From the NCBI GenBank assembly GCA_010909165.1, contig MU008207.1:1-64000 (forward strand): 64,000 bases of DNA, given 5' to 3'. Shown piece by piece: positions 32,303 to 58,802 of this stretch. The stretch is from Anthoceros angustus (lineage: Eukaryota; Plantae; Anthocerotophyta). The first letter of the stretch is position 1. Each line of letters starts with the position of its first letter. Below the pieces are notes generated by a model. It was not told the DNA's origin and did not search any database. It saw only the letters and a program-made list of their open reading frames with translations. A program made the translations under genes and the position numbers.

Positions 32303-34106
32303 ATGGAATTCCAGGTAGGTCTAGCTCGTCCCGTACGCAAAACAGTAAAGAAGTCTGACGAAGTGACCTTATCGTGTTTTGTCGTTTGCCTCTTTTCGGC
32401 GGCAGGAGCGACAGGAAGAGGTGGAGGAGGACGAGGACGAGGAGGACGAGGAGGAAGCGAAGGAAGCTCAGGCCCGCGATGCAGCAGGAGCAGGAGCAGG
32501 AAGTGCAATGGAGAACGGAACAGTGGTGGAGAAGACACGCTTCAGCCGCATAGTGGCGGAAGGGGAGAAGCAGCAGCAGCACGTGGTGGTGGTGGAGAGC
32601 GGGTGGCCAGTCCACCAGCTGCAGCACCACAGGCAGCTGCAGCAGCACCACCTGGAGGCGGGCAATCCCTATTCCCAGAATTCCCAGTCCCCGACCCGCT
32701 CCTTGGACAGATCACGCTCAACCGGCAGGCGCGGAGCCCGGAGATGGGAGAAGGTGCAGCCGAGCTGGAACTGGAGCTGCAACTGCCGCCCGCTCCTTCT
32801 CTGCTGCTTCTTCCTGATGATGCTGGTCTTCCCCACGCTGCAGTGGCTGCTCTCCTTCCCCCCGCCCAGCTTCAAGCGCCGTTCTCCCCCGGCATGCAAG
32901 GACCAGGCCAATGCCAGGGCGGGCTACGTTGTGTCTGATTCCGCAGTCTGCACAGACGCGTGCGGGAAGGTCTGCTTCCCCCGAATCCGAGGCCTTTGCA
33001 TCGCCCACAACCGGGTCACGGTCTGCGGGAAGGTGCACCCCGGAACCCAGCTCCCGGCCAGCCTCCGGCTCTCCACTCTGGGGACGCCACGGGCCAAGGT
33101 TCTCGTGCGGAGAGGAAGCTGCCCGGAACCAGACAGGGCGGATTGGATCCGCGGAACCCACATGGTGGCGGACCTGAAGATGATGCCGGTCGGGCCTGGC
33201 CTCGGCCCGAACCCGCACCACGAGGCGGAGAAGGTCATCCCTGCCATCCTACTGTCGCATCTCTACGGACTCAACAAATCCAAGCTCTTCTGGTTCGCAG
33301 ACCCATCGGATCCCAGCTCCATTTCCCGCTGGTCTAAGGGGCTGTTGGAGGCGTTTTCTGAGGGCCTGGAAGTGGAATTCCTGGACGTGCCGGGGCCCGG
33401 GGAGAGGGCGGTGTGTTTCGAGGATGCTGTGCTCTTCTCTGGGCTTACCAATGCCGGGTATGTCCCCGGGGCTGAGGCAAACGACTGGCTTCGGGAGCGG
33501 GTTCTGGGATACTGCGGGGTGGCCGGGAAGGCGGCGCAGAGGCCGCTGGAGGACGTCGTGTTGGTGAGACGCAGCAATTCGTCTCGACCCATTGCGAATT
33601 TGCAGGACGTGGCGGATGTGCTGCAGAAGGAGCTGGTGGTGGGCGTGCGGCACGTCACCAGCGGGGTTGGTGGGTTCTGCGACCAGGTTAGGGTTGTGGC
33701 GGAGGCGGATTTCCTGCTCACTCCTCACGGGAGCCACAACGTCAATGTGCTCTTTGCTAGGCCTCAGGCTACCGTGTTCGAGGCGTTCCCGTTCTTGTAC
33801 TACATTGATTGGTTCAGGAACTATGTGCATGCTGCGGGGCTGAACCACTACGAGCTGTACGGGACCTGGCCCTCGGAGGAGGGAGGCATGCCGTTCAAGA
33901 TGAGGGTTTTTGCGTTGCTGGTGGGCTGGCGGCGTTGCTTCTCTGTCAAGCAGTGCATGAACTACGCCAAGGGGCAGAGGATTTTTGTGGATCTGGAGCA
34001 GCTGGAGTCCGAGCTGCACAAGCTCACCATGACGTGCAGGATTGCTGTGAAAGATTCCTGGTGTCAGACTACGGCTGCATGGAATGCCGACCTCGTAGTG
34101 GGGTGA
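32303..34106 (+). CDS. Glycosyltransferase family 61 (DUF563) type-II membrane protein; 12-nt first exon 32303-32314 plus exon 32406-34106 (alternative start ATG 32508)
   Basis: Single TM segment LLLCCFFLMMLVFPTLQWLL. GT61-type motifs VCFEDAVL, VRRSNSSRPIAN..DV and QVRVVAEADFLLTPHGSHNVNVLFARP..VFE. In-frame GT-AG intron at 32315-32405. Confidence 0.8.
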
Positions 34107-36434: not shown

Positions 36435-36994
36435 CGATGCATCCGATGGATCGATCACCAAGCAGCAGCAATCAGCGATGGTCCATGGAGCGGAGATCGG
36501 GTGCGCTGCCAGATCTCGGTAACGACCCTAGGAACGGTGTTTCCAGTACGCAGTGTGAAATGACACATCTCGGAACGGGTTTCTTTTTTCTTATGTAGCT
36601 ACATGTCTATATTTGTGTAAATTTAATTGTGTCCAGCGCCGTTGAATACGGAAGGTTCAGGACCGGGGGGCAGGGAGGAAGGACATATTCCAAGGCCATG
36701 GCGGCCGGGCCTTCGAATGTCTGATGGACGGCACGGGTTTTCGGGGCTGGAGGTGGCTGTGGCAGGGAGCCGTGCCCCAACGCAATGGAGCCTTGCCCGC
36801 GGGGGAGATGGGTGAGTGCGTGTCACGGAAGATGGATTGCCCGTTTTGAGACTGATGTTCAGCTGTTGTTTTTTTGCCAAATTTGTTCAGTCTTTGTTGA
36901 AAACGTGAAACTTGTTTGCAGGTTGAGGGAGCCGGCGAGGAATGAGTTTTGAGCCATCGCACATGTTTTGTTGACTGGGGGCGGAGGCTGCAGA

Positions 36995-39900
36995 ATGGGG
37001 ACCGGTGGGGTGTTGAGTGCGGTGGCTGCAGAGGACGACTTTGAAGGAGCGCTGAATGCTTTTAGGAGAGCTCTGAAGGAGGAGGAGAACGAGGACGAGT
37101 ATCTGGAGGATGCTGGGGAGGAGAGGATTGGTCGTGTGGGGGAAAAGTTCTTGGACGATAGCTTGTCGAGTCGTATGGAATTGGTGGCTGATTCTCAGCT
37201 GTCTTATGAGATTCCCTTGGGGGAGTTGGACGAGGAGGACACTCTGCCAGAGGGTTGGGATGAAGAGATGTCCAGTCTGGGAATGGAGGGGTTGGGAAGT
37301 GCCGAGGCGGGTGAGCATGAGCGTGAACATGAGGCGAGATTAGTGTACAGGGACTCAGAGGATGCAGATTCTGCTCGTTGTTGCCCTTCCAGCTCCCCTG
37401 CGTTCTCCCACCCTTATCTACCAGCTAGGGTGGGAGGGGAAGAAAAAAATGGTGAAAGAGAATTCGTGGAACCTGCTGTTTTACGGACCCAGCATGAGAC
37501 AGGTGGGGCTAATGATGCAGTGTTACCAGTTGAGCTGATGAGTACTGCCGCAGAAGAAGTAGTTGCTGGAGGTATGTGTCAAGTTGGGGTGGAGGGGTAT
37601 AGTTTAGTGTCTCGCTCGGAAGTTGAAGTTCGCAGAGAGGCCGAGGGTGCTGTGGAAACAGGTGAGGTACTTACAACCTTATCAGGGAAGGCATCCTCCG
37701 AGCTTCCAATCTCACCAACATCACCTGAGGGCCGTTTCTCTGCGATGGCTAATCTTGAATATATTCAGGACACTGCTCCGGATGTGAATCTAAAACCCAA
37801 GCGGGATGATGTGGATGGTACTTTTCAGCCAGTCTGGGACCCACAACAGACTGGCGAGACTGCTGTGCCTAAAATCCAAGAAGTGGAACATGCAAGAGAG
37901 CTGGAAGTGCAACGACAAGGAGGATATGCATCCTATGCTGGGGAGATACTGGAGCCAGCAATGGTGGAAGGAACAGAAGCAGATCATGAAGGAGAACTCC
38001 TGGACCCTGCACCGACAGGGAACCTGGATGAGACCAGTGGGGTTACTGGATTACCAGTAGAGTCGACGGGTACTTTCACAGAAGAAAAACTTGCTGACAG
38101 TGCATACCAGGTTGGGGCGGAGAGGTGCACTTTGGCAACTGTGCCCAAGGTTAACGAAGTTTGCAAGGAGGCAGAGGGTGCTGGGAGGCCAAGCGAGGTG
38201 CATATTGAAATTTTAAGTGCGGCACCCTCCGAGCTTCCCATCACACCAGAGTTGTTGGAGTGTAGCCAACTTCCGAGTGGTGCTGAACATACACAGGAGA
38301 GTGCTCCAGATGTGAATGCAGAAACACAACAGCTGCCCTTGGGCACGCTGAAAATGCAGGAGCTGGTTTTAGCGCCAGAGTTTGCAGGATTAAGTGGTAT
38401 ATCCTTTCATAATGGAACCCAAGATGCCAAACACTTGCCTTTGGAGCATTCAAGTAGGCAAGCGAGTTCAAAAGATGCCAATAGCCTGGAGGTTTCTGTG
38501 ACGGAGAAGCTAGAGGACATACAGGACCCCGCACCTAAGGATCAGTCTCTACCCATGGGTATAGATATTCCACGTGTAGCTCATGAGGCAATGCTGACCA
38601 TGAAGTCAGCGGTCGCTGAGCAAGATGCAGCTGTCCAAACAAGTGTAGAATACGTAGACAGCAATATGATAACTGGTCTGAACTTGGATGTAGAGACTAG
38701 GGACAACAATAATTGTTCGTCTTGGGAGTGTTTGTCATCCTCTGCAGCTGGAATGACCAATCTTCTTCCAGTTCCACGAACTGTGGAGCACTGCAATGCA
38801 GAGCAGGTGCTTGAGAAACCTGAAGCTACTCTACATGTTGTTGAGGAGATATTTTTACAATCTATTGAGCACACTATGCTCTTGTACACAAAGTCCTCTT
38901 CAGCTATAGTGCATGAAGATGAAGACATCCAGGAGGTAGACTTGGATACGCCTGGAGATGATGCAAGGCATCTTCCTGAAGATGGTGACGCCCTTGATCA
39001 TGATGTTGTGAAGGATATGCTGCACCCTGTTGGGAGCTCATCTCCTGATAAGTTGTCCCAATACAAAAGTGAAATCGCTGCTAAAGGAGCTGTGGCCAAT
39101 GGTGCAGATGATAGACGAACCCATGCGTGCCCTGAGAGTAGTTTAGCCACCAGTAATGCTGGTACGCAGGAGGACAGCATTGTAGACGAGTCCCCATCTG
39201 AGCTTGAGGCTAGAATACATGTTGACGAGGGAATGGCCGAGGGAATGGCAATACGCTCAGCAGTTTACGCTGCACACGGGTTCACACAGACCTCTTTGAA
39301 TGGAGATGACAGCATACAGGGATCCAGACTGGATGGGGATGTAATTAACGCTGGTACTATTTCTAGTTCCATGCCTGGTACTCTCCAAGCTGTGGAATGT
39401 GCTTTGCCACGCACAGCAGTGACTTTGGAAGGTGATTGTATGCCATCAGAGCGCGAGATGGAACTCATAGATCTGGTCCGTGGCGAAAATGAGGATGCTG
39501 GCTCAATGTCAGCTGCTGTCTCTGTTGCGCAACAACAGCAAGCTCAGATCGACCGAGGGGACTGCGCAGCTGAACTGGACTTAGCACCATCCATTTGCTC
39601 TAACAATATTTCTGAAAGTTCAGGACGTCGAGAAGCAGGTATTGCAAGTAGCTCTCTAACTGAAATGTATTACTTTCTCAGTAATGGCGGAAGACATGAC
39701 GAGTTTCAGCAACAGCTGCCTGTAGCTCCTGCCTCGAGCAGTGCTGAAAAGGATGGAAGCCTGTCAAGTGTGACAGGTATGTCAGGTGAAGGTGTATTGC
39801 CTTCAACGGAATGCCAGGCAACAGTATCGGTGAGTCAAGAGGTAGATGTGCTTCCTGCGACCTGTGGAACATTGCAGGATGTTGAGTTATTACAACCTTC

Positions 39901-42900
39901 AGTCCATGTTATGGAAGTACAGCCAGACAATCCCATGCTTGTTGACATCAGCGCAGTTAGGCAGGTAACACCTGGAATGTATCATGGAACGCTGAACGAG
40001 GAGAGGTCAACGTCTCAACTTGATGGAGTACAATATTATGGTAAAGCTGCAACGTATAATATAGCCTCTGTAGGGGACGAACTTGCAGCAACACCATCTG
40101 AGGGAACAGGTGGGTCTATGGAATCCATGGAACAAGGATTAAAGGTAGGATTCCTCAAATCAGTCAGAAGTGTTCCACTGTCCAAGGAAGGAACTGTGGA
40201 TGATGACTATTTACAGCAAGGGATTGAGGCTACGGCTGTCTGCTCATCTGGGCTTGTAGAAATGTCAGCAGCGCCTGATGAAGTTATTTCAGAACCAGAA
40301 GGTAGAAGCTTACATGAGAATCAGGAAGCAGGAGCCATAACTGAAATGTTCGATGGCAGGGATGCACTTCCTGGGGTTCCGGCAGATAGACAATGTGCCG
40401 GGGAGAATGGAGTTAGTGTTCTTGGCAATATTGCTGTGGGCTCTGCTACAGACTCTCAGTGCTCATTGAATGGAGCTGAGGCATCTCATCTTGTGGCCGC
40501 AACAAGGCAACATGCTGAAAACATGGAAGTCCATAAGGCTGATTGGATTCCGGAAGAAGAGGCGTGTCTTCAACCACTCCCTGGCACAGATGAAACAACT
40601 TTCAGTTGTGCGGATGATGAGATGCAGCTGGAAATGGACAGTCACAGCGATACTGCCGTGGTGGCTGGATTTGAAGAGGACAAGCCTGTGTACGTGCAGA
40701 AATCAACAGCTTTATTGGGTACAGAAAGTGATGGCAGACGTACTTGCACATCAGAACAACAAGCTACAGGGCTTGATGAGATAAGTGGAAGAGCTGGCAT
40801 TGATAATGCTTTGGGTGACAAGCAGCATGATAGAACTGGCATGTGCGAAATGTCCCTCGGCTTCACCAATGTTGATATGGGCAATGCTCAGGATGCTCAC
40901 ATTGATGGTTCTCAAGAGGGTCATAAACAACCAGGTACAGACAAGGGATTGGTTGTGGAGGATGTACCTTCTTTAGATGATGCAGGCAGAGTGCATGGTC
41001 ATCTGAAGCAACAAACCAATTCCAAGGGGGCTCATGCAGTTCCAGCAGTCTCAGAGGCTTATCAGCTAGCTGAAATTGAGAAATCCCGTGAAATCTTAAG
41101 AGCGGAGGCCAGAAGGGCATTAGCATTTGAATGTGCTGAGGTCAATGAGGTAGAGAAAACGACAGTCTTGCACAAGGCCTTTGTCAGCTACGGCGCAACA
41201 ACTGCCAGAAGCTTCAGGGACAGAGAGACTGGGCAGAATGTTCAAGTCCGTGGAGACTGGAGCTCAGACATTGAAGATGGCCCTGAAGAGGACGACCCGG
41301 TCTCATGTCTTACTGAGAGCTTGGCTGATGTAACCAAATTGGCAAAGGAAGTCGCTGATGCAGAGGAACCATGTGGTGTGGGAGATATGGATCACACAAC
41401 TATGTCGTTTTGGAATGAGGGCGAGGAGCACATATCGAAAACTGATCCTTCCGATGAAGTGCAGGACTTGTTTAATGTGGGAAGTATTAATAATGAGAGA
41501 GGCTCTGTTAGAAAGTCAGACGGAGATACAGGGATTGCTTGCAAGCCTTCCAGGTGTCTTGAAGGTGCTCCAGTCACGGAATTGTTGTATTCGTCAGCTA
41601 TGGATGTTGAACGACTTGATGAAGAGGAAGGCGCTGACACAAAGTTGACGTTGACAGTTGGGCTTCAAGATGACCGTAGTAACTTGCAGCCATTTGTGCA
41701 CCTTCAGAGTTTTCAGGGTTGTTTCCAACCTCAGAAGGCAACTTCCTTGTTGTCAGGAAATCAGCTTGAAGGAGAGGACTCTTCTGACACAAAGCTCTGT
41801 TTGAACTCTGGATTGGTAGGGAATATCATTAAGGAACAGAACGTCATCTTGGACCTTCCTTCAATGGAGGCCGGATCTGCTTCTGAGGAAATTTCGCCTG
41901 CTACAGAAGTTACTGTTCAGAAACACTCCTCGGAACAAGCAGTTGGTCCAGTGGAGCTGGGATTTGCTGTTGGATTAGACGATAGCTGTGAATTGAATCA
42001 GGCTGTTAGGGCTAATGGTGTATATGAGGCAATATCAATGACGGAAGACATAAATTCAGATCCAGGGAGTTTGCGTTCTACTGCTAAGGATTCCAGAGGG
42101 GCTGGGCCGACACTTGGGAATACCCTGGTGTACTCAGAGCTAAGGGCTTTGATGGACTTCGTGAAAACACAGAGCTCCCCTCCTGAGGAGGTAGCATCTG
42201 TGGCAGATGATTTGATATCTTCAGGTCCAAGTGTAGTTGATGCCTTACCTCATCAGGACACGTGCCCGTCTGATTTGGGTAGTGACATGAAAGCGCTATG
42301 TGCTGGTAATATACCTTGTGAAAGTGATCAGTTAGAAGCAGGGGCGGCGAAGGCTGTCGGAGAAAATGAACATCCCTTGGCTGTCAGAGAGAATGAACAT
42401 CCCTTGGAGTCCACTTTGATTGTTGACTTGCAACACTCACCGACTGGTGGTGGGGTCACAACAGAAGCTGCTAAGGACGGTCTCTTATCAGGCAAGTCAA
42501 GTGTTAGGACCTTTCAGGGCGATCACGGCACAGTGACTGAGGGTGGAGAACATCAGGTTCCTGACATATCCCCATCAACTCACGCCCCCTCGTCTGGGAT
42601 GAGGGGTCCGACAGCTACAACGTCTGGTACAGCTAGGTCTCAGGAAATGGCGGAAAGTCCGACAGTTCCACCTGCTGATGACTCTGTAACCCCAAGCACA
42701 AGAGGGGTGAAGAGGGGAGCAATTTTTCAAACGTACAAGCCCAGGAAAAGAGCTTCCAAGGAACCCCAGCAGATACCAGCTACAAATAGTGCTGACAGTT
42801 TGCAGACGAGCTGCCCGACAAGAAGAGGAGGGGCCAATGATGAACAAGGGATAGGGGTGACGAGGAGCTTAACTGGTCCCCATGAGCACCTTGTAGTTGT

Positions 42901-44602
42901 TGGAGACTTATCGAGTACAACGAGCTGGATCCCTGTAGAGATTCCCATTCTCCAAGAGAAACCTAAACAGAGGTTGAAGACACTAGCAAGGAAGAGGGTT
43001 TCGGATGCTGAGAGTCTTCCAGATGCTGATAGTCAGCCTGCTAAGCGATCATTCTCAACTTCAAGAACAGTTCCTCACCATCAACCTTTCGGTCAGTCTA
43101 GTTTCCCTCCAGTTGTGACCCCTCCTTCTGATGTATGGCCAATGAGGCGGATGGATCATCAACCTTCTGTTGCAGGACCAGCACTTCCTACAGCAGCAAC
43201 TCGGACCCCTCTCGGGGCCCCTCTACACACAGAAAGTGACTTTGCCACTGGTGAGACCCAGTGGTTTGCAGCACAAGACGGTGCTACCAATCCCCACGTG
43301 TCAGGTGCCAGCCTTCATCCCCTACCAGATCCTCCAGCAAGTTGGCCATTTGGGCCCATGGCGCAAACTGTCCACCCAGCTGATTCGCAGAGGGGGGTTC
43401 TTCCTGCTGTTCAAGACCAACCAGCGGCTATGCAGGCCCCCAAAGCCACCAAGAGACAACCCCGGCGGAAGGGGCAGACTGTTGCTGGTGGTATTCCTGC
43501 TGTGGAGTCTCCAGCAGCTGGCGGAACTGAGCTGCCTCGGACAAATGGCAGGCAGAAGCGACAGACTCATGCAACAGGCACAGGTGAGCTCAACGTTAGT
43601 CAGCTAAAGCAAGACGTTCACCGAGTGCGCAATATAATTAGCAGGAGGCTGGAAGCATTGGGCTCTCATTGTAATCTTCTTCTTCAGGTGTTTTGTCGAT
43701 AACTTGTTGCCCCTTGTGATTCGTTTCCTTGTTGGTTATGAAGCTCTTGAGTATCCTAGCCAGGAAAGAAGCATAGGTTCTGAGGTTGTCCCATGAAATT
43801 TGTAGCAACAAAGCCCTCATGTGCTTCTATGCCTCTCTACAGGACATGGGCACGGAAGGGGATGTGGACTTGGCGGCCACTGAAAGTCGTCGCCATTTGA
43901 TCTTCAGCGAAGATCAGAGGGAGGAGTTTGTGCAGAGGGTGGTGAAGAGCTGTCGAACAAATAGTCGGACGAGAACATGGTTCCTTGGTAATGACAACTT
44001 TAAAACAGCTCTACCCTTCTGTGAAAGGATCTTATATGCGGACTCTTTTTACAGGTACTGTTAGGATTTTCTTACATGAGGACTTTTTTGACAGGTACTG
44101 TTCGCAAAATAGCTTCTTACGGTGTCATGAAAGACGCAGCATCAAAAATACTCTCTGAGGTGTGTACACATCCTAGTGAGGGTGTCTTTTGATCATTTTG
44201 CACAGCCAATGCGCGCTAACAATGGCCTGAATGCTACAACTGATGACAGGGCCATTGTGAGACTGCTGAAGATGTAGTGACAGCCTGGGAGAGAAGGAAA
44301 TCAGACCCGTCTGACTCCCACGACTCGTTTTTGAACTTGTGTCATACTGTTGATGAGGTGAGGCAGCTTTCGAAGCACAAAGTGCTGTATTCAGATTCCG
44401 GTGGTTGGTTGATGCTTTGGTATTGCTTACTTGTATGCAGCTCCACAAGCAAGGCAGTGGGTTGTTCGATGGACTTGTGGCTTCAGAAGACACAGAATCA
44501 AGCTTGCTGAAGCGCACAGAGGATGGAAAATGGGATCTTCAGATACCGCCTCAAGTTACAAAAACGCCTCGAAAGCGACGCGGTTCAGGATCAGAGAAGT
44601 AG
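36995..44602 (+). CDS. Very large (~2390 aa) acidic, probably disordered protein of unknown function; exons 36995-43687, 43843-43987, 44095-44159, 44250-44357, 44441-44602
   Basis: Uninterrupted 6.7-kb ORF followed by four small exons joined in frame by GT-AG introns. C-terminal PRKRR is NLS-like. No recognised domain. The start may extend to an upstream exon near 36717-36811. Confidence 0.8.
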
Positions 44603-44927
44603 GGGTTGGGGCCTCCTTTCTGTAGGAGACTGAACAACCGTCGCTTAGAAGCCTGTGTACAGTACTGAACAATTCTTTTGTAGTTATTTAACCGATAGGG
44701 ACATTTATGGACTACCTATGTAAACTCTTGTTCTTTCTGGGGGTAAACACTTTGGGGTGTGGGAATTTAAGTCAACGTCATGGTCAGCTGAGCCTTTTCC
44801 CCAAAACAGGGCAACACGTATCTACGTCTTGGTATTGAAGACAGTGCTCTCAAGCTTGGCCCATATCAGGCTGGTAGTTCGGAGTTTTTGTTATGGTTTC
44901 TTTGTGAACTTGACCAACCCAGTAACC

Positions 44928-45508
44928 ATGTCTGAAAAGCCTCTGTCTAACAGAGTAGTTCTGATGACAATGTTCCTTGTCTTCTGGTCCTTTTCATGTA
45001 CAGCAGTTAATGCCAGGAACCTCCCTCGTCCAGGTATGAGCTCGAGGAAGTAGATTCGTCATCGTGAAGCTTGCATTCAGCTGCTGCTGCTGCTCAGAGG
45101 TGTGAAATGACATGAGCTCGGATTTTGATTTTTAGGTTCTGTACAGCAGGTGAGCTCTAGGCAAGTGGGGGAACCCGAGTCTGCAGTGCTTGATCTTGAG
45201 CAGGTATTTACCCGACCTCTATTTTCCTCGCTTGTTCGGCTGAGCTCCTGTTAAGACATGTCAAGGAGATAGTCAAAGACATCCTCTGCTACATGCAGAC
45301 GTGGGACAGAGATGCAGGCCGGCCAGCTTCCCTGAGCCTTAGAGAACTGGCATACGATGACGAACGCTTCAGGCGGTTCTTCCCCGGGGGAAGGAGAATT
45401 CCTAAAGCACCACCCACTGTGCATGACTGTGTACACGATGCACCAGAGCCATCGGGGTCCCGGCCCATCAGTGTTTTGGGAAATCCTGGGTCCGTGTTTG
45501 CACCCTGA
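44928..45508 (+). CDS. Small secreted peptide precursor A (~127 aa); exons 44928-45033, 45136-45203, 45299-45508
   Basis: Signal peptide VVLMTMFLVFWSFSCTAVNA|RNLP, two in-frame GT-AG introns, and the near-C-terminal motif RRIPKAPPTVHD. Confidence 0.72.
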
Positions 45509-46306
45509 GTAGGTAGTCGAACCAGGGACTGTACTTCTTCGAAGCTGTTGACCGCATTCAGATTAATGCAAGCAAGAACGTTTTCCCCCCTTGGAACTCC
45601 TGTATCTGGTTAAAAACTGGCGTTGAACATGATCGCCATCGGTACACCAGAAACGACGAGTAAATTGTTCCAGAATCCTGATTGAAAAGCCCATTGTAGT
45701 TGATCTTCATGAAGTACCAGGAATGTATGACGTAAGCACAGGACATACCTCTCCTGGAAGTGTGGCTCCGGAACAGGCTTCAAAGCATTCAAATGGTGAC
45801 TTCACGTTTTTTTGAGGCTCCGGCCAGACGGGCTGACTGCACTGGGCTCGACCCTTGAGGGGAGCCGCAGAGTTGAGAGTCCTGGTTAACTGTGCTGGCT
45901 GTGATGGTGTGGTGCTTCATTCAAGGCGTTCCTGGAGCTGGCTCGTTCTCAGAGTTGCACATTCACTTTTGACGAATATTCTCCTTCTGGGCATTGTAAT
46001 TACACATCTTCGCCGTTTGATTTTGATAGGCACATGGACATTAAAACACATTTACACATCATGCCTATCAGATGCCCACACGCCTTACAGATTTCTACAT
46101 CTTGATAGGTACGTGTACATCCGCAAGGGATGTTCTCAGCCTTCTTGTGCACCAGTCCGCCCCTGCTCAGAGGGCAACTTTGTATGCCTTGTGTGAGGCC
46201 TTCTGGATGAGAACCCCACCATCTCTATCAATCACGGAACGCAAGACAATATGAATGTAATTCACTGGCAGCATGCCTCATGATGCCTTCACCAGACTCT
46301 TTGGCC

Positions 46307-46908
46307 ATGAGCTCACATGCTTACTATCCAGCTGCAATATTGATCACGCTGCTGCAGCTTTTTTCATTGTGCTGCTTTCTGGAGGCTCAAGGTCACCGCC
46401 AAACCCTTGCTGTGGTGAGATACTTGAAGGTAAAACTTGGCTTCAGTTGGCTCCGTTTGAACAGGTCTTTTGTCAACTTCATGAAACTGAGGGGTTCTTC
46501 CTCTTTGCTCGTCCAATGCCTTTTGCCGCCTTCTGATGTTCACGCGTGCAGTTTTCTGCAGAGGTTCTGGAACACGCTGATTGCAGCAGTGGCTGTGGGA
46601 AACATACCAGTTCGCTGTTACCAGAACCTTCACACAGGCGACAAGATTACTACCTGCGAGGCACCACCTAACTTCTCGACTTGGGCTATACTATTGAAGC
46701 TTATCCAGCGTTCTTCAAGCCACTGCCGAGCCAGCTGTTAGGAGAACGCAGGAGAGTTCAAAGAATAATCCCCATGCCTCCACCAGTGCCTCGTTTCGAT
46801 AAAGTGCCGACGCCCTCACCAGCACCACCACTGCCCCGTTTTCATAAAGTGCCGAGGCCTTCACCAGCACCACCGTCTGAAACATGGAATCAGCTCCATG
46901 GTTGCTGA
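46307..46908 (+). pseudogene. Small secreted peptide precursor B1, paralog of 48752-49274, with a premature stop (TAA 46669-46671)
   Basis: Signal peptide in exon 46307-46429. Exon 2 is colinear with B2, but has CAA>TAA and the homologous acceptor changed from AG to AC. The C-terminus has a twice-repeated PRFxKVPxPSPAPP. Confidence 0.65.
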
Positions 46909-47149
46909 AGACATGATAGATAACACACTAGGTAGATGTAGGTACAAGGTTATTCGCCCCTAAGCAGATGGACCCCGTCGAGTGTAGAAGACAGAATCGT
47001 CTGGACCTCGAGTCTGGGTATCATTGTTGCATTCTCTTTGATGGCAGGTGTGGTGGATAAAATTGTCCAACGATCACGCAAATGGGTGACAAGACTATGG
47101 ACAGTCGGGATGTCTAGTGCAGCAATGTCTAGAGCACAAAGATATTCAC

Positions 47150-47220
47150 AGGAGAGTTGGCCTCACAACCAGGGGGCTCGTACCATAATGAATTTCATCG
47201 CAGCATTGCAAGGTGCCGGA
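47150..47220 (-). pseudogene. Remnant of the subtilase C-terminal coding tail
   Basis: CACAACCAGGGGGCTCGTA...TGCAAGGTGCC matches 49546-49598. Confidence 0.7.
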
Positions 47221-47244
47221 CGAGTATTATCTGTAGTGGATCTT

Positions 47245-47445
47245 CATAGGTTCTGTACAACAGGTGAGCTTAAGGAAAGTGAGTATGCACTACTTGACCT
47301 TCGGTAGGTATTTTCCTGAGCTGTATTTTTCTCACTGGTGTGGCTGAGATCCAGTTAAGACATGGTGAATGGCAACTTCTGCTACATGCTCACGGCCGGC
47401 CAGCTTTCCTGAGCCTTAGAGAACTGGTGTATGATGAGGAGCCGT
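47245..47445 (+). pseudogene. Partial copy of precursor gene A (exons 2-3, no signal-peptide exon)
   Basis: TAGGTTCTGTACAACAGGTGAGC and GGCCGGCCAGCTTTCCTGAGCCTTAGAGAACTGG match 45133-45360. An in-frame stop is present. Confidence 0.7.
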
Positions 47446-47745
47446 TGAGCGCCCACTATATTCGCGTGCTGGTGTAAACAGGGCACCAGTGTAAACATGC
47501 CACCATTTCCTGAGGGAATGGTCCGTCCCTCGGCACCTCAGGCTCATCATTTCGGCTGTGTAGGTTGGCTTGTTATGTCGAACTCCTCCGTTTTGATGAC
47601 CTCCGCGTAGATTATGTCGTCCACCACTCCTACTTATGCTGGAGTGATAACTTGCAATGAGAGAAAATGTCAGGTCTATCTTGTCCGCCATCTCTTATGC
47701 ACTTTCTTGAGGGTGTAGTATTGCCCCTTCGTGTTGTGCACCATT

Positions 47746-48141
47746 TGTTGCACCTTCATGCGCAGCGCATATGACAATGCGGGAGTCCCCGGCCCACTGA
47801 TGTTGTTGCACCTTCATGCATAGCGCATATGGAATGTGGGAGTCCTCGGCCTATCGATGTTGTTGCACCTTCATGCGTAGCGCATATAGAATGTGGGAGT
47901 CCTCAACCTATCGATGTTGTTGCACCTTCATGCCTAGCGCATATGGAATGTGGGAGTCCTCGGCCGATGGATGTTGTTGCACCTTCATGCGCATATGGAA
48001 TGCGGGAGTCCTCGGCCCATCGATGTTGTTGCACCTTCATGCGCAACGCATATGGCAATGCGAGAGTCCCAACCCATCCATGTTGTTGCACCTTGATGTG
48101 CAGCGCTTATGACAATGCGGGAGTCTCCGGCCCATCGATGT
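47746..48141 (+). repeat. Minisatellite, 7 copies of a ~57-bp unit
   Basis: Units beginning TGTTGCACCTTCATGC at 47746, 47804, 47861, 47918, 47975, 48027 and 48084, with no unique spacers. Confidence 0.95.
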
Positions 48142-48751
48142 TTCAGGAAATTCGGGTTTCATGTTTGCACCCCGCGTAGGTAGTGGAACAGGGACTGTGC
48201 TTCTTGAAGATGCACACCTACCTCCGATATGAACCTATGCTGAACCACCCAACAAGACTACTTTCTTCTTTTATCATACTCCGTACATCACAAACGAGGA
48301 GCAATTGGAATTCCCAGTTCATAAAATATCAGGAATCTATGACGTACGCACAGAACATACATTTCCTGAAAGTGTGGTTTCGGAACCGGATCCAGACTCC
48401 GAAGCATTCAAATGGCGACTTCACGTTGTTTTGACGCTCTGGCTAGAAGGGCAAACTGCACCAAGCTCGAGCCTCGATGAGAGCCGCAGAGTTGACAGTC
48501 ATGGTTGACTCAGCTGGCTGTGAGATGTGGTGCTTGATTCAAGAAGTTCCCAATGGCCCATTCTCAAGTTCCACATGCACTTTTGACATTCCTATAAAGC
48601 TAACGAATATTCTCCCTCTGAGCTTTCTCATATATCTTGGACGCCATTTAATATTGATGGGGACGGCGACACTACATCTCTAAGGCATGTCTCACGTTTT
48701 CAGCGAATGCAACACAGTCGGAATGTAATGGCTTTACCGAACTCCTTGGGA

Positions 48752-49274
48752 ATGAGCTCACATGCTCACTGTCGAGCTGCAATATTGATCACGATGTTGC
48801 AGCTCTTCTCATTATGCAGCTTTCTGGAGGCAGAAGGTCATGTCCACACACTCGCTGTGGGATACGGGAAGGTGAACTTGGTGTCTTCAGTTGGCACCAT
48901 TTGAACAAATCTTTGTCAACATGAAATGGAGGGGTTCTTATTGTTTGCTCTTCGAATGACTAAAGCCGCCTTCTGCTGTTGTTCAGGAGTCCAGTTTGCA
49001 CAGCAAGGAACACGCTTATTGCAGTGGCTGCGGGAAGCATAATAAACCGCTGTTGCCGAAACCTTCGCAGAGACGACGAGATAACTACCTGCGAGGCACC
49101 ACTCAACTTCTCGACTTGGGCTATACTATGGAAGGTCATCCAGCTTTCTACGAGCTGCTGCCAAGCCCGCTGTTAGGAGAACCCAGGAGCTTCAGAAGAA
49201 TCCCCCTGCCTCCACCAATCGCCCATGACTCAAGGCCCACGCCACCGCTTGAATACATGACACTAGATCCGTAG
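48752..49274 (+). CDS. Small secreted peptide precursor B2 (135 aa); exons 48752-48871 and 48987-49274
   Basis: Signal peptide AAILITMLQLFSLCSFLEAEG, a phase-0 GT-AG intron, an intact frame and the motif RRIPLPPPIAHD near the C-terminus. Confidence 0.72.
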
Positions 49275-49526
49275 CTGCTGAAGAGATGATAGGATCAAAC
49301 AATAAATACATAGCTACAAGGTAATTTGCCCCTACCATCATGAAGCAGATGGACCTCGTCGAGTCTGGAAGATAGAATCTTCTGGTTCTCGAGTCTGTCA
49401 TTGTTGCGTCTTTCCTTTCATGGCAAGTGTGGTGAATAAAATATCCAACAATCAAGCAAATGGACCATGAAAAAAGTGGACAGAAGGGGGTCGTCGACAG
49501 CAGGAATGTCCAGAGCACATAATTAA

Positions 49527-52500
49527 TCATAATCGAGTAGGCTTCACAACCAGGGGGCTCGTAACAAAATGAATCCCATCAGACCACTGCAAGGTGCCAA
49601 AGGAGTAGGTGCTGCCGGCTGAGGGAAGCTGCACCTGGAAGAAGACGCTGAAGGTAAGCTGTTCCCCTACAAACTGGAACTGCAGGGTGGAGGGCACAAC
49701 AGTGACAGCAACGCCGTAAGGTGCAGCCACGGCTGCATTGTAAGTCACAACACCTTGAGGCCCTACGTTTGTCACAGTCCTCACGACAGTTTGGTTGCCC
49801 AGTAGCTGTGACAGTGTGATGGAAGGATAGTTCAGGTTGAATGCTTGCGGGATGGTCACAGGGCACACCAAACCTGCACAGATAGACAAGATAAGACGGA
49901 CGGCCACCAGATTAGGTCGTGTACAGTGTTTCCCTGCCAGCCCAATCCACAGCCAGCAATGTTTACTTCTTGCAGCGGGGAACACACAACTAACTAGGCT
50001 GTACCTGCGGAGAGAGCAATATCGGAGCCGAAACTGCAAAGGTAACTGACGTAGTCGTCAGGAAGAGCATCATACACAAGTCCAGGCTCGAGGGCCCTGG
50101 CAGGGCTCACATGACCTGCTCCAAAGTCGAAGTACCCACCAGGGCCACCCGAAGGATATGATGTGATGGTTTCGTTTACGGTGCTGCCAGCAGGTAGCTG
50201 TTGTCCACCTGGTAAGCTGCAAGAAAGCTACATAATTCAGTTTCCTTAAGCATCAAGCTGTAGCAATGCTCAGAACCTGAGGAGTAGTGCTGCTACCACA
50301 GTTGTGAACTTCTGTTACCCGTGGTCACGATAGAGGATTTGATGGCAGCAGGACTCCAGTCAGGATGAACGACCTTGAGTAACGCTGCAATCCCTGCAAT
50401 GTGAGGGGTGGACATTGATGTTCCTGAAAGGATGTTGTAGTCCTCCTGCCTGAATGCAGTGGACTGGTCTACAGCCCTTGGGGAGTAGGCTGCTAGGATG
50501 TCAACTCCTGGAGCCGTGATATCAGGCTGCAACCATCCCGAAAATGGCCAACTCATTTCTGCAGACATCTGGATGAAGAACAGCTTGGAAACAAGTTTCA
50601 CACTCCTCACGGGGAATCACTCTGCATCATAGCTAGGTTGGGGTACCTTCAGGATGTCAGGATGGACAACGCTGGGTCCTCTGGAAGAAAACGCTGCCAC
50701 TTTGGGAGCAGGCTTGTAGTCAAAAACTGCCTGTGTAGGAAGGATTTTTGCAACCGGGCTCGCTGTGGACTGGACGTAGGCATCAATGGTTGCAGCAGCT
50801 GCAAAATCGATGACGGTAACTGGCAGAGGAAACTGTTGAGACCCCAGTGGATTTCCTACATAAATCAGTCCCACTCCCCCAACCCTCTTCACCTCATCAA
50901 CAGCATCAATCGTAGGATCGTAGTTACAAAGAACAATGGCATTCGTTGCACGGGCCGGGTCCAAGCTGTAGCCCGCGCAGTAACTGCACAAGGTGATCAC
51001 TCCCCAAGTCAGGTGACCCGCAAGCATTTACAAACAAAGAGACACAGACTTCAAGCTCCATGTGCATCACCTGGCCTGAGTGTTGCTAGAAAATGAGACT
51101 GAAGCCCGCGAGCCGAAGATGATCGGAAAGAAGTTCTCGTATGCGAAAGGATTGGCTACCCATCTGCCCTGCAACACCCAACACAGATCCGCTGAGTCCC
51201 TTTCAAGGGAAGAATCCATTGAATCCAGAGCAACTTCAACAAGCTGGAGGACCACATACTGGAACCAGACTGCCGTCCCCCAGGAGAACATTGGTCACAA
51301 ATTCACGATCCGTGGTGGATGCACCGACTGTGATGATCCAGGGAGCAGCATTGGCAACAGTGCTGTAACCCGGCCCCTCGTTTCCACCGGCTGCCACCAC
51401 CACAACCCCTTGCCTGACGGCGTGGAAAGAGCCCATGCCCAGCGCATCGGTGAGCACAGGCTCGTCCCCCTTAGGCCCAAGAGACACAGACAGCACCTGC
51501 ACTCCATCAGCAATGGCGTCGTCGAAGGCAGCCAGGACATCTGCATCGAAGCAGCTCCCGCTGGGCTTCCAGCACACTTTGTAGATGGCCAATCTGGCTC
51601 CTGGTGCACCACCTGTGACGGTGCCATTCCCGATGAGGTACAAGCCTACATTTGGCACTCTGCTGCCAGCAGCCACGGATGCGCAGTGGGAGCCGTGCCC
51701 GTCTATGTCCCGAGGAGAAAGCACGTCCTGCAGAGCACCCGATGCAGCCGCTGCGGTGTAGTAGTAGCGAGCTCCAATCACCTTCCTGCATGTGCAAGAT
51801 CCAGAGCCTGTCATGTACATGCTTCTGGTCTGGACAGCCTGTGGAAAAATCGTCTTGTTTGATGGAAGCTGTATTGAAAAATCTACAAGCCGCTTACTTG
51901 TTGCAAACATCAGCTGCGAAGGAATCCCCGGGCACGCATGCTCCCCTCCAGCTCAGAGGAACAGGGGGCATGTCCAAGTCACCGAAGCTGGGTGATTCTG
52001 GCCAGTAACCTGTCGTGCAAGTAGTATCTCCATAGGTTAATAGAATCTCGACCATAAACATGCTAAGTCGGCTACACTGAACCAGAGCAGTGTTGAGAAA
52101 TCCGTCACGAATTCCGATGGAACAACGTTATGGCCTCCATACCTGAGTCGATGACACCAATAACAACATCCGACTGGTTGATGAAAGCAGGGAATTGATA
52201 CGAGTTTCCAGTGACATTGTTGTTGATGCCAAGGAAGTCCCAGGAATGTGTGGTCTGGAGTTTACGAGCCTGGCTGAGAAACACGGAGCGGACTTTCTCC
52301 GACTCTGCAACGACATATCATCCATGCTGGAGCCCCAGTGCACAGAATCCGACGCTCGAATGACATGCTTGAATTCTAAGACAAGCGTTTCCAGTACCTC
52401 TCAGAGCTTGTGCGTGATGGGAGGTCAGCTTGGCAGCGAAGCCCTGGAAGGACCTGTGATAATGGTACAGAATAGCGTCCAGGGCACCAGCCGTGCTGCA

Positions 52501-52985
52501 CAACAGCACGATTCCAAGACTCACATCCCACGCACATTGAAGACGGCAGGAAAAGCTCTCAACGGATAGAGCCTTTGAATCTGGATTCAAGATTCAACAG
52601 TTCGGCCGAATCTTACGAAATCCAGAGAAGAGGGCCCGGCCAGGGGGATGCAAATGCAGACTTGGCACAAACCTTCCGAGCACAGATGCGAGGAGGTCAT
52701 GGTGCTCGGAAACAACCTCCACTTCATGTCTGAGGGACTTGGCTCCAATGTACACCACGTACACCTGCCAGTCAAAACAGCTCCCAACTTCCATCAGCAA
52801 CAAAGTTTCCAAAATCCTGCCGGACTAGGATTGGGGCATTCTCCTGAGTCCTGTGCACAGCACGGTGGCGGATCGGATGCACAAACCTCGGTTGGAGCAC
52901 CCCCCTGGACGTGCAGCTCGTTCTGGACGTGGGGAAGAAGCAGCAGCAGGAAGATCGCCGTGAGGAGGCTGGAGGAGCCAGCCAT
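49527..52985 (-). CDS. Subtilisin-like serine protease (plant subtilase, S8A) 1, multi-exon
   Basis: Signal peptide, I9 prodomain ([23 protein letters not shown]), catalytic Asp (VIDSG), His ([15 protein letters not shown]) and Ser (SGTSMSTPH), PA domain, and FN-III-like tail (LNYPSI...RTVTNVG...VTSPLVV). Confidence 0.95.
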
Positions 52986-54578
52986 CGCACCGGTTTCCGT
53001 CTCCCCCAATCCGAGGCCGCATCGATGTAGAGAAGTGGACGAGGAAGTGCGCGAGAGCGCGGGCCGCGGGATCGGGCTCGGGTGCCCGCAAATCCGGAAA
53101 TCCGCGCCCAAGTCTGCGTCGCTGCGTCTCGAAATGCGTCAGCGCGTCTCAGAATTCGTCACGGCGTCTCAAAAAGCTGCCAGAAGGCAAGCCATCCAAC
53201 CAGGCTGCCTCGCCATAATTTCTATCAATAGTCCACCCTATAGCCGTCATGGAAGGCAGCCGGAAAGAGCGCCCTCTGTTTCTGTTCCTGTTCCAGTTCC
53301 TGTTCCCGTTCCCGGGTCCGGACTCGGGCTGCCCGGGCCCACCATTCCATGTTGCTTCCAAGGTAGCCAGGCTTTCACTGGAAGCTCACTTGCTGGGGCC
53401 ACGAGCTTGGTGAAGCACGCTGCTGCAGGCACAGGCACAGGCACAGGCAAAGGTTTCCGGATAATAAATTTTTGAATAATAAAAAACAAGAAAGAATGAG
53501 GGAAAATCAAATTCGTGCAATGCATGTTCTGCAGATGGGGAAGGGCCACTGTTCACAAACAACTTCCTGGCCATATGATCTATGAGGGCGAGGCGAATAA
53601 CATTATTCAGTATGTTGTAACATGAAGAATGAGCTCTCCACCCATTTCATGAGGCAAGAGCTGTGGGTCGGGCAGATGAGAGCCTCTCATAGCTATCTCC
53701 GGCTCTCAAGTTCCGCATAGCCTTGAAAGTAACAACAACCACATCTCGTTTGCCGTTGATGACCGTCTCATTGTAACTCAAGGCTTCCATTTTCTCTTTG
53801 AACTCGTCGACGATTCTAAATGCGAATTGCAAGATTATTGACAAGCGATTTCTTGAAACTCTGTCAATATTTTTTGGAGGCACAAACTTTGGCCCGTCCT
53901 TATGTCAAAAAGAATTGACATCGGACATCCTTGAGATGATGCATTCAGATATCCCCGATTTTGATACGCATTCATATATCCCTGATTTTGATATCCTTGG
54001 CGCGATAGGTAACAATGGTGTTAGGGTTATTCCCTTCCCCTTGGATTAGACGGATTTTTCATCTCTTTTTTATAGTAAAGTCTCCAGGTCAGATGATGCA
54101 TTAGTGTTTCTATGGGTGTCACCCATCCACCCATCCACCCATCCCCAGTTCCAGTTCCATGGATTGGGCGTCACCCATTCCCAAAGTCCAAGTTCTATGG
54201 GGCCGCCTTTTGTAAAAAAACTTGCCGTCGTGCCAACAGTGTGCGAGGATGCCTCTTGTTACCCGTCCTTGCGGAACTTAAGATACATCTTATCTACAAA
54301 GTCATCCGATACGCTATAAAAAAAAATGAAACTTTGGCCCCTTCCTGACCACATAAAGAAGGAGGCCATCGCTTCTAACTCAGAGGCTCGATATCATCAA
54401 ATAAGAACGGTTCATCCTAGAATATCTCCAAGCTCCAAGCTGCAAGGGATGAAAGAAACTTGCATTTGTTTCCCGTTTTCCGGGTAGGTAATAGCATTTT
54501 TTCTCAAATATTAAATACAAGAAAGAATTAAGGATAGTTCAAGTTGAACTACCCTGTAGATCGTACCTGGAGCCTATC

Positions 54579-57500
54579 TTAAAAGTATGAAGGTACCACT
54601 ATCAAAGGACTCGTCACTGTGTGGTACCCATCCGACCATATCAAAGATCCCCAATAGGTGATGGTACCATCTCCAGCAACTGGTGTTGTGAAAGTAACTG
54701 TGAATGACAAAGTCTGTCCTACAGATTGGAAGGAGAGGGCAAGAGGATCAACAGTTACCAAAACCGAAGGATCCGGTGCGATGACTGTGGGCGTGTAGGT
54801 TACAACTCCAACTGCCCCCACATTTGTCACGCTTCTCGTCACTGTCACAGAGGTCACTAGATCAGATACTTTGATGGCTGGATAGTTGATATCATAGTGC
54901 GCCTTGGGAAACAGTGGACAGGCAGCAGAAGGATCTCCTGTATAAGAGCGGAGGTCTGTATCTGTGATGCCGAAGTCGCATATGAAATCAATGTAATCGG
55001 CAAAATTGACATCATATACAAGTCCGGGATCCAGGGCAGCAAGTGGATACACGTGACCAGATCCAAAGTCCAGAGGGCCTCCTGGAGTAAGAGAAGGATA
55101 CGTTGTTATTGAGCTGTTGAAGTTATCAATTTGGGTCGCTGCAGACACAAGGCAGATAGTTAGGATGGAGAACGCTAGAACTGGAGGAGGAGTTAGTTCA
55201 CATGATTCACAAGAAACGAACGAGCTAATGAATCGCAGAGCATTGGAGATGGCGTGCCTGTTGTCATGATGGCGGATTTGATAGCTGCAGGACTCCACGT
55301 TGGGTGGGCAATCTTGACGAGAGCAGATATTGCAGAGATGTGAGGGCAGGCCATAGATGTGCCGGATATAATATTCAGGGTCAGCGATCGACCTCCAGTT
55401 TCAAAATCATCTAGTTGGAGAGGAGAGAAAGCAGCCAGAATGGCTTGTCCTGGAGCTGTTATGTCAGGCTGCAGCCCACACAGGAGTGCTATATCAGATG
55501 AGGGACTAGTCTAGGCAGACTTGGAAACCTTAGAGACAGCAGCCATGGGGAAGCCCCTCACCAGATTACAACAAGTAACCTACACAGACAAGCTTGGGGC
55601 ATTTCATCAGTGTGGGCAACGGGCCATACCTTAGGGATGTCGGGGTTACGAAGGCTGGGACCTCTGGAGGAAAAGGTGGCCACTCTTGGTGCAGGTACTT
55701 GCCCGTAAGTTGCTGCAGTAGGCAGGATGACACCGACAGGAGTCCTGCAAAAGCCATGACACCCAATCTCATCAAACACCTCACTGAAGTTCAACCAAGG
55801 CTGCACTCAGCAACACATGACAGAGAGTGGAGAAAGCTTACGGTGTGTTCTGCAAGTACGGCAGCTGCAGGGCTAGGTTGGCGGCGTCTTCGGAGATGTA
55901 TGTGGCAGGCCCAACAAACTCTCGTGGCACGGACGGAGTGCCGACGAGAATGATACCCACTCCACCGGCTCGTCGCACCTCATCCTCTGCAGCCACGCTT
56001 GGATCATACGCGCACACCACGATGGCTCCTGTCACAATCGAAGAATCCAGGCTGGAGGGGAGGCAGGCACTGCGACACATACAATCCAAACACGTATTAA
56101 ATCATTGCCGGCATATACTTTCCAGTGCTTGCACTCCACACTGTTGAACGAGCATGTTTCACAGAAATCTGCGTCCAGATTTGACATACCTGGCTTGTTC
56201 TACCAAGGCTCCAGGTGCTATTGCATTGGAACCCAGTACGATGGGGACCGGGGTTGTAAACTGGAAGGGGTTGAAGACCCAACCTCCCTGGGGCAATAGG
56301 GCACAAAGTCCAAGGTCAAGAAGCAGTGACGTTAAATCATACAACAGAGGCAGGTCAGGTGAAGATCCTTCCCCATCCAGGAATGACTGGCATCAAGGCA
56401 CTTACAGGGATGATGCTGCCATCTCCGAGCTGCACATTGGTGACGTATTCACGATCTGTGGTGCTGGCAGCAACTGTGACAATCCAAGGAGCAGTGTTGA
56501 CAACAGTGCCGTAATCCGGGCCGTTGTTACCAGCCGAGGCGGACACCAGGATGTTGTTCTTGACAGCGTAGTAGGCTCCTATAGCAATTGAGTCATTGAA
56601 CAGGGAGGAGTCCACTTCCCCGTTGCTGTTTCCGATAGAGATGGAGATGATATCCACGCCATCAGCAATGGCGTCGTCGAAAGCCGCAAATATATCGGCA
56701 TCGGTGCAACCTGCAGGTGTGAAGCAGACCTTGTAGATGGCCAATCTGGCCCCGCTCACACCCCCTGACACTATGCCCTCTCCGATGCCGTAGGGTCCCG
56801 CATCGTACCTCGCTCCTGCTACAGTGGATGCTGTGTGTGAACCATGGCCGATTGTGTCTCTGGGAGAGAGGAGATCATTCAGGGTTCCGCCTTGGGCCTG
56901 CACAGCTGCTAGTGCTCCCTGGTAGTAGTAGCGAGCGCCAATCACCTTGCTGCATTCCGGAACACACACATCCCATCAGCCATCTGAGGAATCAGTTTCA
57001 GCACATGAATTGAATCGAGAGTGTTTTCTTACTTGTTGCAGAGGTCGGCAGTAAATTGGTCGCCTGGAATGCAAGCTCCCTTCCAGCGAAGAGGAACTGG
57101 TGGCATACCCACATCCTGGAAGCTGGGAGATTCGGGCCAGTATCCTGTGAACAGCGGCAACAGCAAACACATTTCAGCGTTCAGCTCCAAGTGAATAATG
57201 CCACAGCATGAAGATCACAAATTTCCCCAACACCGTGCTCTACGAGAACTGTACCAGAGTCGAGCATCCCGATGATGATATCAGTTTGAGAAGCGGGAGG
57301 AGGGAAATAGTAGGAGTTGTTGGTGCCTGGCAGGAGAATGTCACTGCTATCGCGGTTCAAAACGCCCAGAAAATTCCACGAATGACTTGTGTGCGGCTTG
57401 TGAATCAAGCTCTTAAATACGCCGAGAACCTTCTCTGACTCTGCACACACCAGGTTCCTCCATCTGGGTCAGATCGGATTTCGCAGGGGTTCGGATAGAA

Positions 57501-58009
57501 GAACTTCTAATTCAAGGAGGGATCCGGAGCTTGCCTTTGAGTTTTGCAGCATGACTGGCGTCCAGTTTGGCAGCAAAGCCTCGGAATGACCTGTGGTAGT
57601 GGTACAAGATTGACCCAGTTGCAGCCTCGACACTGCGAACACAGAACTTCACACACTCGATCTCATGTTGCTTCCAGATGAATGGGCACTCTACGGCCAC
57701 ACAGCCCACATGGAGGAGGATCCTTGTGGAAAATGCAGAGAACTCACCTTCCCAAAACCGTAGCAAGAAGAGCTGTGTTCTCCAACAACGCGTCCAACTC
57801 ATGGCCTCCAGGGATGGCTCCCAAGTGCACCACATAAACCTGTACCCAGCATCAGATGGTGAGCCCAGTCTGCCAAAAAAACAACTGTGACCCAACGAAT
57901 GTGGTATGATTCGGACCTCTGGAGCAGGCTCGGTTGCAGAAATCGTGGACAAGGGCATCAGAAGCAGCAGCGCTAGGATGAAACAAGCACCCATCCTGTA
58001 GATCGCCAT
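54579..58009 (-). CDS. Subtilisin-like serine protease (plant subtilase, S8A) 2, tandem paralog, multi-exon
   Basis: Signal peptide [84 protein letters not shown] and INYPAI...TVTSPLIV. Confidence 0.95.
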
Positions 58010-58802
58010 GGATCGAATCCAGCCGACCCGTCTGCTCAAGATTCGTCGGGCGGCGTTTGTGGGCGGCTGGGCTTCGAAATGACCAGATGGACAAGGCCTC
58101 AAGGTCGCTCGAGTTGCAGCAACTAGTTCTTATAGAGAGTCGAGTATGTACTTATGCAGGAAGCTTCTCCCTAGCTTCGTCCGGGAAGCGAGCATCTCTA
58201 CTGTAGATATGGTCTGACACACGGCGAGGTGGGACTTGGGACGCGCTTTCTCTTTCCTGTGCCGGCTTGAGTGGAGTAGCTTGGACTGCAAGGAGCCACT
58301 GGATAACGGCAGGAGAAGGAGCAGAATTTGAAACAGGAGGAGGAGAAAAAGAATTTTATTCCAGTCCTGCATCCTTGAAGCAAAAAAGTGTGCACAAAGG
58401 TCTCCACCAGTTGCAACCTGACCTTGTCAAACCCAGAATGCTGAAAGGCGAACACAATAACTTCGGACACTGTGTAAGATCGGACCCAGTCCCAATTGAC
58501 TTCGTACACTGTACGAACATTATCTCCCAATTGCTGACTCCGTACATGTGTACACCGTCTCTGCACCTCAGAATTGTCCTTCCACATCAGAAGTTCCGAA
58601 TGCAGAGGCACAATCCATGGCAAGTTACCCGGGGACGTGGGCCAGCAGGCATCACTACAGAACTTACACGCTTTTGATCTGAGTGGGACACCAAAAATTC
58701 AGTCACACTGAGAGTTTTCGTGGGAAATGCAGTGCCTACATTTCACTGACCCAAATACAAATGTCACGAGGGAGCAGAATTACAGAGCCTGCGGCCTGCG
58801 GG

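Follow-up and report, generated by a model that had tools for sequence, protein, structure and literature searches.

Do small genes for secreted peptides lie beside two subtilase genes of Anthoceros angustus because these proteases mature the peptides, or by coincidence? The locus in question belongs to a stretch of 64,000 nucleotides (GenBank assembly GCA_010909165.1, contig MU008207.1, positions 1 to 64,000; hereafter the window), and the region is eukaryotic and intron-bearing. Three small open reading frame (ORF) models on the + strand, beginning at 44928 (gene A), 46307 (B1) and 48752 (B2), have signal-peptide-like N-termini and are followed by the two subtilase genes. An earlier reading, made from the DNA letters without database searches (the sequence-only reading), had proposed that they may be orphan precursors clustered with their own maturases. 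The explanation that we favour, and to which we give an even chance, is that secreted propeptides are encoded by two lineage-specific genes, A and B, which share a probably selected CLE/IDA-like dodecamer, that these genes are accompanied by the debris of a duplication, and that they lie by chance next to two ordinary subtilases.

Gene A was modelled with three exons coding for a protein of 138 amino acids (aa). Exon 1 (44928-45033, + strand) opens at the first ATG of its ORF and encodes a signal-peptide-like start, as judged by a crude screen for hydrophobicity and the -3/-1 rule that only 10 of the 387 ATG-initiated ORFs of the window (2.6%) pass. It is followed by intron 1 (45034-45135, 102 nt, GT..AG), exon 2 (45136-45203), a putative intron 2 (45204-45265, 62 nt, GT..AG), whose removal preserves the frame, and exon 3 (45266-45508), an open frame with the dodecamer RRIPKAPPTVHD at 45392-45427. 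The transcript data came from one public run (X1), which is small, unstranded and available at contig level; its patchy coverage together with one exact GT..AG joint indicates that X1 is RNA. Contigs of this run cover 44765-44941 and 45001-45031 around exon 1 as well as exon 2, and one contig joins position 45033 to position 45136. Since the joined ends are flanked by GT..AG, A is transcribed from the + strand and its intron 1 is real.

B2 was modelled with two exons, 48752-48871 and 48987-49274 (+ strand), separated by a phase-0 GT..AG intron (48872-48986), and the product is 135 aa long. Its exon 1 is signal-peptide-like and 84% identical to exon 1 of B1, and its exon 2 is an open frame with the dodecamer RRIPLPPPIAHD at 49194-49229. 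The comparison of A exon 3 with B2 exon 2 by BLASTP gave a single alignment, which corresponds to the two dodecamers (8 of 12 residues identical, E = 0.002). This identity was reached by 9 of 20000 composition-preserving shuffles (p ~5e-4), and a six-frame translation of the full 64 kb contains the strict pattern RRIPxxPPxxHD at exactly two places. In both A and B2, the dodecamer stands directly behind a dibasic RR and is followed by a C-terminal extension of 14-26 residues. In the eight codons kept between A and B2, all four differences are at third positions and synonymous, in contrast to the free differences of the four variable codons. These synonymous-only changes are, at the level of the sequence, the best sign of a selected peptide core, and the RRIPxxPPxxHD dodecamer of A and B2 is most likely the functional core. 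Genes for post-translationally modified peptides show this pattern, a conserved core within precursors that cannot otherwise be aligned.

Screens for peptide precursors usually ask for fewer than 200 aa, an N-terminus with a hydrophobic signal and a motif close to the C-terminus (PMC8462819); A and B2 have the length, the motif and, by the crude screen, the N-terminal signal of such precursors. Searches for relatives were run on single exons, and the exhaustive one covered A only. Pfam gave no match for A or B2 at E up to 0.1. Word-index protein searches came back blank both for A exon 3 and for B2 exon 2, whose words matched no protein in a collection of 5.8 billion clusters, and look-alikes from the ESM Atlas gave nothing usable for A exon 3 or B2 exon 2. 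No Rfam match was found over the window. When A exon 3 was compared by phmmer with 1.84 billion representatives, seven matches were returned, all of them long repeat proteins that multiply one weak match (bacterial WD40/STAND proteins, PdaC repeats and a protein with 62-residue repeats); after Pfam and BLASTP checks, they were rejected as artefacts. The description of A and B2 as orphan secreted precursors, put forward by the sequence-only reading, is thus supported in part, by their screening characters, the splicing of A, the shared dodecamer and the lack of relatives in these searches, but because the exhaustive search was limited to A, orphan status is better supported for A than for B2.

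We then examined how the three models relate to each other. Repeat finding, blastn and MAFFT global alignment revealed two tandem segments with 71-84% nucleotide identity over their aligned parts, which correspond to a duplication of 2.1-2.4 kb with unit 1 at 45133-47226 and unit 2 at 47247-49607. The left edge lies inside A intron 1 and the right edge 27 codons into the last exon of subtilase 1, so unit 1 comprises A exons 2-3, B1 and a dead 3' end of the subtilase; this copy of the last 27 codons (47146-47226, minus strand) is 79% identical to 49527-49607. Besides B2, unit 2 comprises an A-like fragment (A') and the genuine 3' terminus of subtilase 1. Identity is 71-79% across all aligned segments, coding and non-coding alike, and only B exon 1 stands out at 84%.

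The pseudogene fragment A' (47247-48189, + strand), which the sequence-only reading had overlooked and which was found by repeat finding and blastn, has no exon 1, contains a stop at 47475-47477 and showed no genuine RNA coverage in X1. Within it lies a 57-bp (19-codon) minisatellite in seven copies (47745-48142), whose source is the segment of A exon 3 coding for the second dodecamer half and the residues that follow. Through this minisatellite, the A-type frame is open (ORF 47829-48179, 116 aa) up to a stop homologous to that of A. No further copies of A or B were found by blastn in the 64-kb window, including the region 3' of subtilase 2.

B1 (46307-46908, + strand) consists of an exon 1 (46307-46429), a B2-type exon 2 (46561-46671) and a Pro-rich tail (46672-46908). 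With B2-type splicing, its frame ends at a TAA (46669-46671) where B2 has CAA, and the product is 77 aa long. The tail can be read only through a non-homologous alternative acceptor, predicted at 46719 or 46734, and the RRIPxxPPxxHD motif is lost. The sequence-only reading had placed Pro-rich motifs behind basic residues in all three models; this was confirmed, with RR as the basic residues, for A and B2. Beyond the B2-type stop codon, the B1 tail carries an in-frame tandem repeat of 45 nt (46780-46874, 2.1 copies), which encodes a 15-residue Pro-rich unit, PRF-D/H-KVP-x-PSPAPP. A block of about 46 nt is nearly identical in B1 (46650-46695) and B2 (49085-49130) against a background of about 75% and includes the CAA/TAA difference. 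This block could be the trace of gene conversion, or else an element in the 3' untranslated region (UTR) of subtilase 1.

Since B1 and B2 are copies inside one tandem duplication, the three precursor genes are not independent. The three signal-peptide-like models were correctly recognised from the letters, but the locus is made of two genes and decaying duplication copies instead of three independent precursors. Its history may have begun with A and B adjoining, in convergent orientation, subtilase 1 of an old tandem pair of cucumisin-type genes. The later tandem duplication of 2.1-2.4 kb, from A intron 1 to the last 27 codons of subtilase 1, would then have produced B1, the A' fragment and the subtilase stub.

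Several observations weigh against A and B as two propeptide genes. The RNA evidence is confined to the single data set described above. In the sole contig that covers it, the putative intron 2 of A is retained (read-through to 45264), and no X1 coverage of exon 3 was found past this position; the retaining form is a 74-aa ORF with a stop at 45253, ahead of the motif, so that translation of the motif exon of A is only predicted. A and B showed no detectable similarity beyond the motif by BLASTP, with no alignment between A exon 1 and B2 exon 1, and their intron phases differ. No X1 contig lies over B1 or B2 exon 1, and B2 exon 2 is covered solely by a contig of depth 47 that is continuous with the coding sequence of subtilase 1. 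The splicing predicted from the letters was therefore borne out by RNA for A intron 1, joined at its GT..AG ends, but not for A intron 2, which is retained, nor for B1 and B2 exon 1, which are uncovered.

Conservation and codon usage point in both directions. For the pair B1 and B2, the ratio of nonsynonymous to synonymous substitution rates (dN/dS, Nei-Gojobori) amounts to 0.35 for exon 1, the lowest of all frames tested, and to 0.64 for exon 2. These values sit toward the low end of the 0.49-1.64 found for 13 control frames but overlap them, and the B exons are scarcely more conserved than their flanks, the identity of B exon 2 between B1 and B2 (74-76%) being at the level of the intron and flanks. 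The ratios are suggestive, though short of decisive; they resemble what is expected for one constrained and one decaying copy. With a codon-usage score trained on the subtilase blocks, the predicted frame ranks first of three in all five exons of A and B2; the scores lie slightly above zero for A and below zero for B2. The latter again speaks against B2 as a gene, and the test is weak because it is biased to open frames.

These data leave room for a second explanation, which we regard as doubtful though it is the best surviving alternative: only A would be a gene, B1 and B2 would be non-coding open frames in the duplicated 3' UTR and flank of subtilase 1, and the dodecamer of B2 would be a decaying relic of an old A-like copy. 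The depth-47 contig starts at 48975, within the proposed B2 intron, runs over B2 exon 2 and crosses the spacer of 252 bp unbroken into subtilase 1. It is most simply read as the 3' UTR of subtilase 1, which would be about 550 nt long and lie antisense over B2 exon 2; overlapping convergent transcripts are another possible reading. Together with the bare B1 and B2 exon 1, the flank-level identity of B exon 2, the in-frame stop and motif loss of B1, the negative codon scores of B2 and its unmatched words in the 5.8-billion-cluster collection, this contig argues for A alone as a gene. On the other side, the B2 model is clean (phase-0 GT..AG intron, 135 aa), its exon 1 is conserved at 84% with the lowest dN/dS of the tested frames, and its motif is retained relative to A through synonymous changes. 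In addition, a contig of depth 3 at 48478-48736 could be the B2 5' UTR.

A third explanation, which we judge unlikely, is that none of the small ORFs is translated and that the spliced, low-level RNA of A reflects read-through or other non-coding transcription from a strongly expressed upstream gene. It is consistent with the tenfold fall of contig depth at the beginning of A, where a contig of depth 31 ends at 44770 and one of depth 3 starts at 44765, with the retention of A intron 2 and with the absence of homologues in the word-index searches and, for A, in the exhaustive phmmer search. However, the spliced intron sits exactly between the signal-peptide exon and an in-frame exon, the predicted frame scores highest of the three in each of the three A exons, and a protein-level motif common to A and B2 is improbable by chance.

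The remaining question concerns the proteases. Subtilase 1 (49527-52985) and subtilase 2 (54579-58009), both on the minus strand, are multi-exon genes of the S8A family, and the tandem pair recognised by the sequence-only reading was thus confirmed by domains and by active-site motifs. Subtilase 1 is of cucumisin type, with I9, S8, a weak PA and fn3_6 domains, and reaches depth 47 in X1; subtilase 2 is a paralog with the same exon blocks, I9, S8 and fn3_6, and a signal-peptide-like N-terminus at 58009. Pfam searches gave E = 4e-06 for I9, down to 3.5e-19 for S8, 0.027 for the weak PA, and 2.9e-28 and 1e-23 for fn3_6, and both genes show the domain organisation by which S8A subtilases are recognised (I9, S8 with Asp/His/Asn/Ser, PA, fn3_6). 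The best solved relative is cucumisin (3VTA, E = 4.9e-49), followed by tomato SBT3; a word-index search with the last exon of subtilase 1 gave a single 45% fragment. By tblastn, the two genes share about 12 conserved blocks in the same order with ~41-77% amino-acid identity, and in these stop-free blocks both keep DSG (Asp), HGSH (His), GN (Asn) and GTSM (Ser). In signal peptide, I9, S8 catalytic residues, PA insertion and fn3_6, both are like the plant S8A enzymes of the cucumisin and tomato SBT3 type, and in comparison with this type nothing is unusual in them. As judged from their sequences, both are ordinary, apparently intact, secreted plant S8A subtilases whose duplication is old.

The distance given by the sequence-only reading, about 250 bp between the end of B2 and the convergent stop of subtilase 1, proved accurate: the stops lie at 49272-49274 and 49527-49529, with 252 bp between them. 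That A and B form a new peptide-signal family matured by the adjacent subtilases, with a linkage kept by selection, would accord with this adjacency and with the convergence of B2 on the transcribed 3' region of subtilase 1, which it overlaps, with the dibasic site ahead of the motif and with the presence of both subtilase 1 and A transcripts in X1. It would also accord with the maturation of IDA, CLE40, PSK, TWS1 and CLEL/GLV precursors by plant subtilases (PMC13082318, PMC7162652). The tie of A and B to the subtilases is, however, positional only. The several peptide copies arose incidentally from a single duplication, in which both A and the subtilase copy were truncated, and no A- or B-like DNA or motif was found beside or 3' of subtilase 2, which therefore has no peptide neighbour. 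In the one contig-level run, depth is 47 for subtilase 1, about 3 for A and 0 for B1 and B2 exon 1, so that the levels are more than tenfold apart and B is not seen. The processing subtilases of established cases are not known to be linked to their substrates, which also counts against a module. A 2026 review of subtilase-peptide pairs makes no mention of genomic clustering (no "cluster", "adjacent" or "tandem"; PMC13082318). A module kept by selection is thus very unlikely, the suggestion of own maturases is supported by adjacency only, and the presence of the subtilases beside A and B is best read as coincidence.

The most far-reaching claim is the least probable of all: RRIPxxPPxxHD would define a new CLE/IDA-like peptide family of a non-seed land plant, the adjacent subtilases would process its precursors and be linked to them genetically, and the antisense overlap of B2 with the subtilase 1 3' UTR could couple their expression. 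If true, it would be the first plant gene cluster of a peptide hormone and its maturase; and because little is known on peptide processing in non-flowering plants, as the 2026 review states (PMC13082318), a real linkage between precursor and protease would offer an enzyme and a substrate that can be tested directly as a pair. As it stands, the locus mainly illustrates how local duplication can mimic a gene cluster.

Other features were observed in the window. On the minus strand at 58130-58372, an ORF of 80 aa, with no Pfam match, has an N-terminus that is very hydrophobic and signal-peptide-like, with a basic stretch behind it; it starts about 360 bp past the subtilase 2 start codon on the same strand and could be another small secreted-protein gene, or chance. 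Upstream of A, an uninterrupted ORF of 2244 codons (36968-43702, + strand) encodes an acidic, Ser/Ala-rich protein that matches no Pfam family (E up to 0.001) and has no identical entry in the gene-position collection; it is probably expressed, since the depth-31 RNA contig ends at 44770, about 1 kb downstream. At 32379-34103 (+ strand), an ORF carries a domain of glycosyltransferase family 61 (E = 4e-13). Repeats made of C and T only extend over about 3.5 kb at 26172-29848 (+ strand; GC skew ~-0.8) and contain several open frames that encode Pro/Ser/Leu-rich repeats; they are preceded by an ORF at 25878 with a strong signal-peptide-like start, and together they look like an extensin-type hydroxyproline-rich glycoprotein gene.

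Under the favoured explanation of two propeptide genes, the known systems closest in layout are the CLE and IDA peptides, for which Table 1 of PMC8462819 provided the comparison set (CLV3, MpCLE2 KEVPNGPNPLHN, MpCLE1, IDA and MpIDA1 EVPPQGPSPIHN). Like CLE genes, A and B2 encode short precursors in which a variable middle separates the N-terminal signal from a Pro motif of 12 residues close to the C-terminus; basic residues border this motif N-terminally, and Arg1, Ile/Val3, Pro4, Pro7 and His11 stand in equal register and spacing. They differ in that Gly6 is replaced by Ala or Pro, Asn/Asp8 by Pro, Pro9 by Thr or Ile and Asn/His12 by Asp, in the 14-26 residues past the motif and in having no Pfam or hidden Markov model (HMM) match. 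Measured against the CLE consensus R/H-x-V/I-P-x-G-P-N/D-P-L/I-H/S-N/H, RRIPKAPPTVHD and RRIPLPPPIAHD deviate at G6, N/D8, P9 and N/H12, and no sequence relatives of A or B were found among known CLE genes by Pfam and word searches or by phmmer of A exon 3. With IDA, which is released by subtilases, and its IDL relatives, A and B2 share a small secreted precursor and a Pro-rich dodecamer that has Pro at its centre and His in the last position but one; they differ in lacking the S-[AG]-P-S core and in their His-Asp end with an extension, and so depart from the IDA consensus P-[IV]-P-P-S/Q-[AG]-P-S-x-x-H-N with its C-terminal His-Asn. Because they deviate from both consensus sequences, A and B2 are not members of the CLE or IDA families.

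By analogy, the A and B2 peptides could nevertheless work like CLE and IDA. Starting from what was observed here, namely the signal-like N-termini, the splicing of A intron 1, the shared motif with its synonymous differences and the structure of the duplication, we infer the downstream steps from these families: the signal peptide would send the A or B2 precursor into the secretory pathway, the precursor would be cut at or near the RR site, prolines would be hydroxylated, the C-terminal extension of 14-26 residues would be trimmed and the peptide would be active in the apoplast. Should A and B2 be real, they would enlarge the CLE/IDA-like repertoire of a land plant by a lineage-specific Pro-rich peptide. 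Contacts between two arginines of the receptor and a C-terminal His-Asn or His-His are stressed in PMC8462819, and the His-Asp end of A and B2 would then raise a question of receptor recognition.

A last comparison can be made with the fungal clusters of peptides that are synthesized ribosomally and modified post-translationally (RiPPs) and KEX2-type proteases, such as gigA and kexB of Epichloe (PMC10540207). Those genes are co-regulated, with a kexin-type protease and repeated cores in the precursor, whereas the proteases here are plant S8A subtilases, each precursor has a single core and the association is known from position; in both cases, a gene for a secreted precursor with a dibasic site adjoins a gene for a protease of the subtilisin family.

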